Shown: piece after piece, positions 53,658 through 62,961 of the stretch
How positions within the stretch are numbered: position 1 is the stretch's first letter
Layout of the letters: the number at the start of each line of letters is the position of its first letter
Origin: Oculina patagonica
Lineage: Eukaryota
NCBI RefSeq assembly: GCF_052425735.1
Contig: NC_135767.1
Location: 1,488,001 to 1,552,000 of the forward strand
Length of the DNA stretch: 64,000 bases
Direction: 5' to 3'
The notes under the pieces: generated by a model
The model's database searches: none
Told to the model about the DNA's origin: nothing
Seen by the model: only the letters and a program-made list of their open reading frames with translations
Translations under genes and position numbers: made by a program

Positions 53658-53921
53658 CTAAGGAGCAACATTATTGTTGTTAGCAAAGTCCATAATTCTT
53701 TCCAGTCTGATGTTGCTAAACTCTCTCGCTTGCGTCATCTGTTCCGTGCACTCCTGTATTTTCACTTGTATTTGCTGAGCAGTTGTTTCGGGTAAATTCA
53801 TCTGACAGCATAACTCGCTCTTCTCTTTGAGGGACTTGAGTTTCTCGTGTGGAACGTCAAATAACTTCTCTTGGATCCTGACAGCCGCGTTAAGTTGTTC
53901 CATTGCTGTCACAAAGTTTCC
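53658..53921 (-). CDS. intact terminal exon paralogous to the last (TPR-helical) exon of the DED-STAND-TPR gene; parent transcript unresolved
   Basis: Acceptor TTCATTTCCAG|GGA is identical to that at 50516. The 87-aa product GNFVTAMEQLNAAV..IMDFANNNNVAP* matches 59/87 residues of 50516-50785 by hand alignment, with the same stop position. Confidence 0.8.
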   Translation of the reverse strand, partial: GNFVTAMEQLNAAVRIQEKLFDVPHEKLKSLKEKSELCCQMNLPETTAQQIQVKIQECTEQMTQAREFSNIRLERIMDFANNNNVAP

Positions 53922-53998
53922 CTGGAAATGAAAGAGAAAGCAGCATCGATGAAGACGCCGAAAAGTCACACGCAGTGCCGGGATGTCACCCCCATTTA

Positions 53999-60000: not shown

Positions 60001-62961
60001 TCCCGCGCCTGGGTTCAACCCCTATGAAGGGCGCGCGGAAGAGAGAGTTCAGGGACCGGACTAGGGAGAAACAGGATAAACGCGTGACGAGTCCAAAGAA
60101 CATCTTCTGCGTAGGAGGCTACAGTTTCCAGCAACAATGACAAAAACGAAGTAGCTACGTGAAATGCATTCACCTTATAGTTACGTAGTTGCCCAGTCCA
60201 ACCACATCCTCGTTCACTCTTCTTGCACTTCACACGAAGAGAAAGTATGTCCCTCTTCCAGGCCACATCGCTAAAAAACTGTGACAGGAAAGCAAATTAT
60301 AAAACGACCTTCATTGTTCAGTTTATCCAGGGAAGAAAGTGGTACAAACTCAAAAACTGCCGCCGAGACAACGCGACGTCACGACTTAAAATTTTAAACA
60401 ATTATAACCGTCAACACCGATTTTCGCTTTATTTCGTAGATTGAATTTAAAAGCTTGCTTCAATCCCTGACACTTATTCTCCTTAGTTTGTTACACGTTT
60501 GACAGCCAAAGTGGAAACAATTTATAGCGACAAACATACCGATTTAGTCGCCTTCTCAGCTGTTGTTTGGGCTCGTCACGCAAAGCTCCACCAAGCGTTT
60601 CGTGACGACACAAATAACGGCTGCAAAGGAGGCAAACGTTATGCTGGATTTCCACTGACGCGTAATTTTCTACGTGCGTTTACGTGCGTGAAAAAGTTTA
60701 GAGACAATGTATGAACGACTTGCGTACAGGTTTACGCAAGTCGTTCATACATTGTCTCTACATTTTTTTAAGCGCGTAAACGCACGTAAAAAATTACGCG
60801 ACAGTGGAAACCAACCTTTAGTCTCCCTCGCAGCCGTTTTTAGTGTCGTCGCCCGGGAGGAGCGTTGCGTGACAACACAAAAACGGCTGCGAGGGAGACT
60901 AGGCAAACATAGACATCAGGATCCTTCCTAGTTAAATATAATGAAGAGCGATAGGGATAACTGTGTTTATAGTTATGATTTGTTCAGCTCACGTTAGTTA
61001 GAACTCACCCCTTCATCTTCAGGAATAGGATTTCTTTCTTGCGGACAATGGTTGCCTCGCCTGAAGGGAGATAAATCGCAAATTCAAACTTATGATTTGC
61101 ATGCATGTTCATGACAATATTCAATAATTCAGTATCCAATATGCACAAGCTCCCATCGAGAGCTATTCAAAAAAAGCTAAAAGCAACTGACGAAGGAGCC
61201 AATAGTTTGGTTCCGAAACCGGTCTTGCGCTTTTTCAGTGATTCCTGAACTAGTACCAGCCGCTCAAAAGCAGAGATCAGAAGCTGAGGGCGTTAAATCC
61301 ATCCGGAATCGACTTACAGCACTGAAAACCAGACGAGCCAAATGTAAACGATCACTTCAAGTCCTCAGAGAACACGCGAGGAACTCCACGTGTCCCTACG
61401 GACTCCAATACAGACCGAGACCACACATCCGGTTCGACCAGACCTTCTAGACAGCCTGGCAGTCTAAGGATGGTCCGATACAGGTTTTTCAAAACGATAC
61501 GATATCGATACAATATTTGCCTTTTTCCTCGATATCAATATCGATTTTGACGCCATTTTCGTCCTGATGTCACGTGATTTGTCTGACCATACAAAGGGTC
61601 GTAAAGGACAGTCCTGACATTATAAATGATAGCTATGAATGTTGATTTTTGGTCTTTTTGTTTCACTGATGCATCAGCAATGTGTGGACATCAAGCAAGG
61701 CAATAAAAAAAATAAAATATTGACAAGAACATCAATATTTGTTTGAGCAAAACTACATTTTAAACCTCAGGTGCTGACCAGAAGACCGCAGGCTCAGGTC
61801 GCGTGTGCAGTATCGAAAACGTATCGAAAGTGCGATATTTGTCGAAAGTATCGATACTTTTCAAAATTGTCAAAATATCGGTGTATCGAATATCGGCCCA
61901 TCCTTACCTTGGACCATATCAGCCGAAACGCCCAGGCGGAACTACCGAGGTCTTGAAAGGACCCCTCCTCACAACTCTCAAAATCTTTGCCTTACAAACA
62001 CATTTTAAACCCACTGAAACTTTTCAATATACGGACTTCTCATCTTGCCACCCTTTAAACACTAAAAAGGGTTTTATCAAAGGAAAAGCGCTGCGCCTTT
62101 TAAGAACAAACTCAGTCAAAGAAAACTTTGAAACAAGCAAACAAGTCTTTAATTTGAACAATGACTCTGCGAAAGAGGCTACCCTTTAATACTCGTTCAT
62201 AAAATCTTGACTGCAGTTCAGTTCAGCGATAGAAAAGAGGCGCTCCAAAAGAAACTAGAGACTCTACCGTTACAACTTCCAACAACCCGGCCACCCACCA
62301 GCTACCCGCCGAATCCTAAAAAGATTCTTATAAAACACTGGCACATTTTCAACAACAGACTAAACTCAAACACATCTTTAACAAGCAACCGATTGTATAT
62401 TATAAAAAGGAAAAATCTCTCAAGGACATTCTTATCCGCGCATGCAAAACTTCCCTCAGTCAAACAACAATGAAAAAGCGATTAACCAATAAAGCGTGGA
62501 GGAAATTTGCATATGATCAGTTTTAAACCGACCCTATCTCAGTGTAACGGTCGTGCAATTTTTGACGATTACACAATAATTGGGTTTAATTCACTCCTGA
62601 TCACCAAACCCTTTCCGTTCAGTGATCACTTGCATTACGAACGTAGAAGCTGAGGACTTGTAGACTTTAATCAGAAACATTTGAGAGTCAGTGATAGAAC
62701 TGAACATTTTACTGTTGACAGTCCTTTAAAATCACATTTTGAACATCAGTGTTTAGGAGAAGTTAAGCATTTTCAAGAGCGCATGTATACAACAACATAC
62801 CTGAGTGCCTTTAACAAGCATGTTTTGCAAAAGCGGTGACCACAAGAAGTCTGCACTGGGTTTCGCATGGCAAGAAAACAAATGGGGCAAGTTTGGCATG
62901 GAGGTAACTCGTCTACAAACTCAAAATCATAGCCACCGTCAACTTCAGTTTCTTCCTCCAT
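55784..62961 (-). CDS. TRAF-like protein (RING, TRAF-type zinc fingers, coiled coil; no MATH domain), ~303 aa to first stop
   Basis: Exons 62961-62801, 61060-61009, 60278-60174, 59424-59266, 57766-57689, 56585-56508, 56062-55784(TAA). RING GGYDFEFV..CPICFLAMRNPVQTSCGHRFCKTC..CPQE, then RDILSLRVKC..RGCGWTG and repeated H-x3/4-C..C-x2/3-C fingers, typical of TRAF4/6-like proteins. The frame continues to a donor at 55704 and exon 54795-54708. Confidence 0.85.
58361..58425. mobile_element. 65-bp hairpin MITE with 9-bp TSD (Mutator-like)
   Basis: Perfect 23-bp TIR CTGACTCGTCCCCAGTCGTCTTC; TTGTTGCGC at 58352-58360 and 58426-58434. Confidence 0.85.
58529..58875. mobile_element. TIR element with TTAA-like target (Kolobok-like)
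   Basis: TIR GGAGGCTCGATGTAGTTTTTTTTAGCCC; flanks ATAA / TTAA. Confidence 0.7.
59588..60064. mobile_element. MITE in TRAF-like intron 3
   Basis: GTCCCTGAACTCTCTCTTCCGCG / CGCGGAAGAGAGAGTTCAGGGAC, plus an inner inverted pair. Confidence 0.7.
60645..60812. repeat. near-perfect ~170-bp palindromic element
   Basis: TTTCCACTG.CGCGTAATTTT..TAGAGACAATGTATGAACGACTTGCGTA-caggtt-TACGCAAGTCGTTCATACATTGTCTCTA..AAAATTACGCGACAGTGGAAA. Confidence 0.85.
61141..62473 (+). mobile_element. internally deleted Penelope-like retroelement remnant in TRAF-like intron 1
   Basis: TEVLKGP..QTHFKPTETFQYTDFSSCHPLNTKKGFIKGKALRLLRTNS resembles the PLE RT motif-7/thumb region. It contains frameshifts and stops, lacks most of the RT core, and is interrupted by a MITE. 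Confidence 0.75.
61465..61906. mobile_element. hAT-type MITE with TATCGA repeats inserted in the Penelope remnant
   Basis: TIR TAAGGATGGTCCGATA / TATCGGCCCATCCTTA. Confidence 0.75.

Follow-up and report, generated by a model that had tools for sequence, protein, structure and literature searches.

A TRAF-type ubiquitin-ligase gene without a MATH domain was identified on the minus strand of a 64,000-nucleotide stretch of Oculina patagonica DNA (contig NC_135767.1, positions 1,488,001 to 1,552,000; hereafter, the window), and the protein that it encodes probably ends in an acidic tail, with a duplicated 3′-end of the neighboring NOD-like receptor (NLR)-like gene, NLR-B, serving its transcripts as 3′UTR and giving rise to no fusion protein. 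None of the junctions observed encodes a RING-ZnF-coiled-coil-TPR protein. The gene comprises eight exons with canonical splice sites (62961-54701; Table 1), which encode RING, zf-TRAF and putative coiled-coil segments; all of its introns are of the GT..AG type, and the phases computed from the splice sites confirm that exons 2-6 end in phase 0, as previously noted.

Table 1. Positions of the TRAF-like exons and of the associated NLR-type segments, numbered from the first nucleotide of the window.
Feature	Position	Strand	Description
TRAF-like exon 1	62801..62961	-	Start codon (ATG) at 62961; RING finger, first part; phase 2 out
Exon 2	61009..61060	-	End of RING; phase 2 in, phase 0 out; canonical splice sites
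Exon 3	60174..60278	-	Linker and first part of zinc finger; phase 0/0; splice sites present
Exon 4	59266..59424	-	TRAF-type zinc finger; phase 0/0; Pfam zf-TRAF 4e-4
Exon 5	57689..57766	-	First half of zf-TRAF (profile positions 1-25); phase 0/0; Pfam zf-TRAF 5.4e-6
Exon 6	56508..56585	-	Second half of zf-TRAF (profile positions 26-49); phase 0/0; Pfam zf-TRAF 7.5e-6; splice sites present
Exon 7	55704..56062	-	Putative coiled coil with basic linker; phase 2 out, donor GAAA/GTAAGG
TAA	55784..55786	-	Premature stop of exon 7, which extends 80 nt beyond it
Exon 8	54701..54795	-	Small Ser/Asp-rich exon; stop TGA at 54710-54708; GTGAGT donor after 54701
Orphan exon	53658..53921	-	Sequence duplicate of the NLR-B last exon; in TRAF transcripts either out of frame or part of the 3′UTR
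Duplicated 3′ flank	51941..52683	-	88% identical to the NLR-B 3′ flank (L004, 484-1265); same order and orientation
NLR-A last exon	50516..50785	+	Last exon of a DED-NB-ARC-TPR gene; more distant copy of the orphan exon

The N-terminal RING finger typical of canonical TRAFs is represented in exon 1 (Pfam zf-C3HC4_2, 3.5e-9; TRAF3_RING, 6.8e-7), which ends at the donor CAG/gtatgt and shows 80% nucleotide identity to a paralogue on contig C4 (the C4 paralogue). Exon 2 is conserved in this paralogue and in the orthologue of the latter in another coral (L015), and exon 3, the translation of which contains a TRAF6-like motif when read by eye, is 90% identical to the paralogue at the nucleotide level. 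TRAF-type zinc fingers were detected by Pfam on exons 4, 5 and 6, for which the best PDB chains are those of TRAF6 and TRAF4; exon 4 aligns to residues 102-150 of TRAF6 (5vo0; E 1.7e-4), and its splicing to exon 5 is recorded in an X6 contig (joint 59266/57766, with GT..AG ends). The K/E-rich exon 7 yielded weak Pfam matches to coiled-coil families only (SIKE and Syntaxin; E about 1e-3). A protein homologue search with the coiled-coil exon of the window returned no match, and a search with the L015 open frame that holds exon 4 returned the query itself as its sole match. The TRAF-MATH profile (PF21355) had no match in the window (C10:1.488-1.552 Mb) or near the C4 paralogue (C4:23.29-23.31 Mb), and 82 matches genome-wide. 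The TRAF-like gene is truly MATH-less, lacking the TRAF-C/MATH domain of canonical TRAFs; the earlier statement that no MATH-coding exon follows the coiled coil thus stands, and the conserved ORF ends in a small acidic exon.

The coiled-coil exon had been taken to end at the TAA, but it continues for a further 80 nt to the strong phase-2 donor after 55704, a donor that the C4 paralogue and L015 have retained in the same phase. The exon-7 segment of X1 record 3 and X6 record 29 stop at the same donor, and depth in 55500-55699 is absent from every run. An origin of the coiled-coil-exon contigs in the C4 paralogue was rejected, the contigs being about 94.5% identical to the window as against 79% for the paralogue. 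At the site of the TAA, the contigs of X1, X2 and X6 carry C instead of T, which gives CAA (Gln); the codon is also CAA in the C4 paralogue, and Gln is found in three homologues from other corals (P0028, P0029 and P0030). The TAA is read as a derived nonsense codon specific to this assembly or haplotype, with misassembly or heterozygosity as possible causes; it removes 56 residues, leaving 303 aa instead of 359 aa. Phase 2 at the end of exon 7 is matched by the small exon 8 alone, which is therefore the in-frame partner of exon 7; the joined frame reads ...KQKR-N-SSQSDSD...SDTSDED-stop, and a similar acidic tail in equal phase is found in the C4 paralogue (SSDEDTE-stop) and in L015 (SSSSDED-stop). 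The depth of X6 record 29, scaled as 2.82 x 91/200 = 1.28, equals the X6 depth on the bin of the small exon, a match from which we infer that the two are linked. This exon had been overlooked in the first-pass annotation as the in-frame coding end of the TRAF-like gene.

Downstream of exon 8, the orphan exon does copy an NLR-like C-terminal exon, as had been proposed: it matches the last exon of NLR-A (65% aa and 78% nt identity; tblastn E 3e-39, blastn E 3e-64) and, more closely, that of NLR-B, which lies just outside the window (93% nt). The label "TPR" given to it is loose, however, since no TPR was detected by Pfam in its 87 aa; residues 1-27 alone match long proteins (1,285-1,346 aa). Similarity confined to the exon was rejected, because the 743-nt flank is duplicated together with it on both sides of the TRAF-like gene, and only two full copies exist genome-wide; by sequence comparison, the orphan exon and its 3′ flank are a direct duplicate, of ~2 kb, of the 3′-end of NLR-B. 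ARAGORN, applied to the repeat beside the orphan exon, and a scan for bacterial promoters and terminators returned nothing useful. Three nonsynonymous substitutions to one synonymous (and two further ambiguous nonsynonymous ones) were assigned to the orphan branch and one to five to the NLR-B branch, counts too small for significance; the substitutions of the orphan exon look unconstrained or under relaxed constraint. Its 3′ half differs from NLR-B at a single position in 135 nt, which we read as gene conversion, although constraint could also be the cause.

The neighbors themselves carry the DED, NB-ARC/STAND NTPase and TPR-type C-terminus of coral NLR-like receptors: in NLR-A, DED (5.8e-16) and NB-ARC (5.1e-10) were detected by Pfam on upstream exons, together with a weak TPR_12 (0.0089), and NLR-B, at locus L004 directly upstream of the TRAF-like gene, is 79% identical to NLR-A over NB-ARC and 71% over DED. 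Neither DED nor NB-ARC was found near the C4 paralogue or L015 (to a distance of about 10 kb), and an orphan-type exon is likewise absent at both. The proposal of a linked TRAF/NLR module is thus not supported by the paralogous locus or by the corresponding locus of another coral, neither of which shows the linkage.

The transcript data consisted of Logan contigs rather than raw reads, from four runs of which none is recorded as RNA, the type being guessed; the contigs are ~5% different from the window and come from another haplotype, strain or species, in which the gene structure may differ, and contigs drop rare isoforms. X1 record 3 (472 nt) covers 56066-55703 and continues directly with 53920-53817, corresponding to a GT..AG intron of 55703-53922 with one ambiguous G and hence to the joint 55704/53921. 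This was the only contig with a TRAF-to-orphan joint, found in one of the four runs, and its first 104 nt of orphan exon differ from the window at five positions, two of which could be read. Transcripts of the TRAF-like gene that include orphan sequence do therefore exist, contrary to the outcome named in advance as refuting the proposal, and the suggested connection between exon 7 and the orphan exon is real as splicing, but not as a reading frame: the join leads from phase 2 into a phase-0 exon and translates as ...KQKR-K-E-T-L-stop. The two in-frame junctions that had been predicted, 55811-53921 and 56508-53921, were not seen among the contigs. The donor GTC/GTAAAA (55811/55810) exists and is in phase 0, as described, but it is weak compared with GAAA/GTAAGG and is crossed unspliced in X1 record 3 and X2 record 13. 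A gene model of the genome annotators, KAL9959364.1 (112 aa; 54775-54701 and 53921-53661), contains the further joint 54701/53921. As the orphan exon is joined either out of frame or after a stop codon, it adds 3′UTR and not a receptor-tail domain, and since the transcripts join it out of frame, no TRAF-receptor-tail fusion protein is expected. The idea of an E3 ligase whose targeting domain was replaced by the C-terminus of its neighbor is thus not supported, in view of the stop at the junction, the acidic exon as the conserved coding end and the apparently relaxed constraint of the orphan exon.

These observations favor an account in which the TRAF-like protein would consist, in order, of the RING, the TRAF-type zinc fingers, the coiled coil and a short basic linker, with the small last coding exon supplying an acidic Ser/Asp tail. 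Judged from its domain content alone, it would most likely be a self-associating E3 ligase or adaptor unable to dock on receptors via TRAF-C, and a putative dominant-negative TRAF role for the family is a possibility. The window copy would be a derived duplicate, in which a Gln codon changed to TAA in this assembly, and the conserved home of the gene would be the C4-type locus. A partial duplication of the NLR-B 3′-end may then have placed the orphan exon downstream of the TRAF-like gene, where it could serve as a terminal exon joined straight to exon 7 or following the small exon; it would then be translated out of frame, with a stop after four codons, or lie behind a stop codon. The locus is a case of ordinary immune-cluster turnover.

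The orphan exon might instead be an inert relic of partial duplication, with the TRAF-like gene ending at the small exon or the TAA and the TRAF-to-orphan contig representing splicing noise or another species. X2 record 10, which crosses the 54701 donor from the small exon and continues into the sequence beyond it as a terminal exon would, the poly(A) signals that follow at 54538 and 54461, the lack of a donor downstream of the small exon of L015, and the restriction of the joint to a single run all agree with such an end. However, the sites of the joint are exactly canonical, and X1, without any depth on the small exon (54795-54701), contains no other form; moreover, the GTGAGT donor is kept in both Oculina paralogues and the annotators' model likewise takes the 53921 acceptor, and we regard an inert relic as unlikely. 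It is improbable, too, that the orphan exon belongs elsewhere, whether as an alternative terminal exon that NLR-B transcripts would reach by reading through the TRAF-like gene or as part of an independent small gene, KAL9959364.1. Both last exons start in phase 0, so that the penultimate exon of NLR-B would join the orphan exon in frame, and the near identity of the 3′ half to NLR-B and the annotators' call of a two-exon ORF fit this reading; against it, splicing from NLR-B needs a read-through of 12 kb, and the orphan-type 5′ half lies with the TRAF coiled-coil exon on one X1 contig at equal depth (8.74). The 25 N-terminal residues of the ORF correspond to the small TRAF exon in a frame other than that conserved in the paralogue and orthologue, and because of this difference in frame the model looks like a by-product of ORF calling in the TRAF 3′ region.

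A minor or condition-specific isoform, in which the phase-0 donor at 55811 or 56508 is spliced in frame to the orphan exon to yield a RING-ZnF(-coiled-coil) protein with an NLR-type tail, would direct the ligase to whatever the tail binds. The phases fit (phase 0 at the ends of exons 2-6, at the 55811 site and at the start of the orphan exon), the orphan frame is open over 87 codons behind an intact acceptor, and the X1 contig demonstrates that the exon can be reached by TRAF splicing. The only joint seen is nevertheless out of frame, the 55811 site is weak and passed over, the changes on the orphan branch are mainly nonsynonymous, and the exon has no counterpart at the C4 paralogue or its orthologue, which makes this isoform highly improbable. 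A rare or induced form of the same junctions (56508 or 55811 to 53921), encoding an E3 ligase with an NLR tail kept NLR-B-like by gene conversion, would dock where the receptor tail docks and so regulate the receptor pair, but we consider it highly improbable as well.

The preferred reading, that of a MATH-less TRAF with a non-coding NLR-type terminal exon, replaces the exchange of MATH for an NLR sensor tail with a simpler and testable account, in which the 3′-end of a receptor gene was partly duplicated and captured by the adjacent gene. It also delineates, in corals, a conserved family of TRAF-like proteins that have an acidic SDED-type tail and no MATH domain, and flags the reference allele of the window copy as carrying a premature stop. 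KAL9959364.1, annotated as a "hypothetical protein" of 112 aa, probably represents a by-product of the TRAF 3′ region, a reading of use for the annotation of coral immune gene clusters.

With canonical TRAFs (TRAF6 and TRAF4; PDB 5VO0, 3HCS and 2YUC), the coral gene shares a RING at the N-terminus, TRAF-type zinc fingers behind it and a putative coiled coil. Where these proteins have TRAF-C/MATH, it has instead a basic linker with an acidic Ser/Asp tail behind it. Relatives of TRAFs that lack MATH are well established: TRAF7 and short proteins such as RNF151 combine a RING with TRAF-type zinc fingers without MATH, TRAF7 carrying WD40 repeats and RNF151 lacking a long coiled coil. No WD40-like exon was seen in the coral gene. 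NOD-like receptors with DED, NB-ARC and TPR often occur in corals as pairs or triplets, as in Acropora (PMC4083563; PMC10236652), and NLR-A and NLR-B form such a local pair, each having exons for DED and NB-ARC and, at the C-terminus, TPR-like ones. What differs here is that a partial 3′ copy of one member sits 3′ of an unrelated TRAF-like gene, whose transcripts acquire it by splicing.

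In the stony coral Oculina patagonica, the TRAF-like gene on the minus strand of the window (C10:1488001-1552000) comprises eight exons (see table), and every intron has GT..AG ends; the intron between E4 and E5 is further backed by a contig joint (59266|57766) with these ends. A genome-wide search with the TRAF-MATH profile gave 82 matches, none of which lies in the window or near a paralogous copy of the gene on contig C4 (hereafter, the C4 paralogue). Therefore, the gene is confirmed to be MATH-less, as proposed in the first-pass annotation, in which the phase-0 ends of exons 2 to 6 were also correctly assigned. 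The sequence observations in that annotation were largely real, but its reading as a RING-ZnF-coiled coil-TPR protein chimera in a paired module is not supported. We propose instead that the reference allele holds a truncated version of a TRAF-like gene that lacks MATH and has a conserved acidic tail, and that this gene has taken over a duplicated NLR last exon as its terminal exon, either non-coding or read out of frame.

Exons of the TRAF-like gene in window coordinates
Exon	Position	Strand	Feature	End phase
E1	62961-62801	-	RING, including Pfam TRAF3_RING	
E2	61060-61009	-		0
E3	60278-60174	-		0
E4	59424-59266	-	zf-TRAF (Pfam)	0
E5	57766-57689	-	zf-TRAF (Pfam)	0
E6	56585-56508	-	zf-TRAF (Pfam)	0
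E7	56062-55704	-	Coiled-coil exon	2
E8 (small exon)	54795-54701	-	Only downstream exon fitting phase 2	

Logan contigs from public sequencing runs, which are presumed to be RNA, were aligned on the window; they differ from it by about 5% (another haplotype, strain or species) and are blind to rare isoforms, levels and transcript ends. The gene had been thought to end at a TAA codon in E7 (55786-55784), but two contigs (X1 record 3 and X6 record 29) extend past this codon and stop at 55703/55704, and depth at 55500-55699 is zero in all four runs. A donor, GAAA|GTAAGG, is present at 55704; therefore, E7 ends at this position, 80 nt beyond the TAA. Translation of the E7-E8 join gives ...KQKR-N-SSQSDSD...SDTSDED-stop, with the TGA at 54710-54708. 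The C4 paralogue, which aligns collinearly with window positions 54653 to about 63698 across both exons and introns (70-90% nucleotide identity), has an identical donor and phase and a similar acidic tail (SSDEDTE-stop), and the syntenic locus in another coral assembly (L015) has the same donor and phase and a like tail (SSSSDED-stop). Since these features are common to both loci, the conserved protein keeps the acidic tail, and its predicted order is RING, TRAF zinc fingers, coiled coil, basic linker and acidic tail; the window protein would be 359 aa if the TAA codon were read through. X6 record 29 stops at 55704, leaving 134 letters unplaced, and its depth multiplied by 91/200 equals the X6 depth on the small-exon bin, a match that hints at, but does not prove, the E7-E8 join. 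X2 record 10 continues across the 54701 donor, as though the small exon were terminal there, and poly(A) signals are located downstream at 54538 and 54461.

The small exon of the window also contains a 5-nt TGAGT (54706-54710) that is absent from the C4 paralogue (L008, about 9500); these five bases supply the TGA stop of the window immediately ahead of the GTGAGT donor, and the stop of the C4 paralogue is the TGA within GTGAGT itself. The basic linker (55704-55783) is about 20-25 residues shorter than in C4-type proteins (the C4 paralogue and the other-coral homologues P0028-P0030), without the segments around ...VEKDRC.NPV... and ...YRDTDY.

At position 55786 (minus strand), contigs of X1, X2 and X6 carry C for T, giving CAA, which is also the codon in the C4 paralogue, and the three other-coral homologues read ...TAAENQK... 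at this site. The contigs side with the C4 paralogue at six of the nine listed E7 differences from the window; therefore, it is the window allele that has changed, and the TAA is, judged by these sequences, derived, although it may be heterozygous or stem from an assembly error. The protein in this assembly ends at 303 aa. In mammals, a stop 80 nt ahead of an exon junction, as the TAA is here, would mark the transcript for nonsense-mediated decay.

The claim that the orphan exon (53921-53658, minus strand) is a copy of the last exon of the neighboring NLR-like gene reflects true homology, with 65% amino acid and 78% nucleotide identity to the last exon of NLR-A, the plus-strand DED-NB-ARC-TPR gene of the window. 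Only three copies of this exon type exist in the genome, and the nearest (93% nucleotide, 94% amino acid) is the last exon of NLR-B, a minus-strand DED-NB-ARC-TPR gene located directly upstream of the TRAF-like gene, just outside the window (L004). A 743-nt piece of the NLR-B 3′ flank, with only two copies in the genome, also follows the orphan exon, with order and orientation preserved. Since exon and flank are both duplicated, the orphan exon is part of an approximately 2 kb partial duplication of the NLR-B 3′ end, with a breakpoint about 18 nt upstream of the orphan-exon acceptor. Polarization of the substitutions with NLR-A assigned three nonsynonymous and one synonymous change, plus two ambiguous nonsynonymous changes, to the orphan branch, and one nonsynonymous and five synonymous changes to the NLR-B branch; this pattern suggests relaxed constraint on the orphan exon, but the counts are too few to test. 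Its 3′ half (53658-53790) differs from NLR-B (L004 1941-2075) at 1 of 135 nt, as against about 10% in the 5′ half and 12% in the neutral flank, and looks like a recent gene-conversion tract. Pfam detected no TPR in the 87 aa of the exon, and long proteins (1,285-1,346 aa) match only residues 1-27 of the orphan-exon protein.

High-copy repeats lie beside the orphan exon (53500-53640 and 53990-54420; summed contig depths about 3,800-16,800, all four runs), and ARAGORN found no tRNA in the repeat. The window may carry a repeat insertion missing from the sampled organisms, because every contig over the exon loses its match at 53641/53642, 16-17 nt past the stop codon.

The predicted joining of the TRAF-like gene to the orphan exon does occur in RNA, but out of frame. 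The key joint rests on one spliced contig, X1 record 3 (472 nt, gapless), which covers 56066-55703 and then directly 53920-53817, with one G assignable to either side; its canonical reading is an intron at 55703-53922 and a joint at 55704|53921. X1 shows no depth on the small exon; therefore, this form skips it. Joining of phase 2 to the phase-0 exon gives AAG GAA ACT TTG TGA (K-E-T-L-stop). The weak donor at 55811, suggested earlier as a possible join site, is crossed unspliced by X1 record 3 and X2 record 13. The annotators' two-exon protein (KAL9959364.1, P0001; 112 aa), which matches the stretch under study at 100%, is modeled with a 54701|53921 joint; its first 25 residues come from reading the small exon outside its conserved frame, and in the TRAF frame a stop comes before the 54701 donor. 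By eye, the out-of-frame C-terminus (53909-53921, minus strand) resembles a class I PDZ-binding motif (S/T-x-hydrophobic), a likeness of four residues that could easily be chance.

NLR-A (+), the orphan exon (-), the TRAF-like gene (-) and NLR-B (-) are clustered within about 100 kb. No DED or NB-ARC gene was found within about 10 kb of the C4 paralogue or its other-coral orthologue, which counts against a paired TRAF/NLR module; therefore, the conserved location of the family is free of NLR genes, and the copy in the window would be a secondary arrival within the NLR pair. Upstream of the NLR-like gene, 35085-37676 (+) holds an intact 863-aa ORF that looks transposase-type, possibly hAT/ZBED-like by the appearance of its translation. 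Within NLR-B, on the opposite strand, L004 3477-4429 (+) contains long overlapping frames encoding a Cys/His-rich repetitive peptide (units like CNI.CNNF.VC.LSATL) and is probably an intronic tandem DNA repeat. Among solved structures, TRAF6 and TRAF4 are the best matches to E4, and coral NACHT/NB-ARC genes in pairs or triplets, as well as DED and TPR combinations, have already been described (PMC4083563; PMC10236652).
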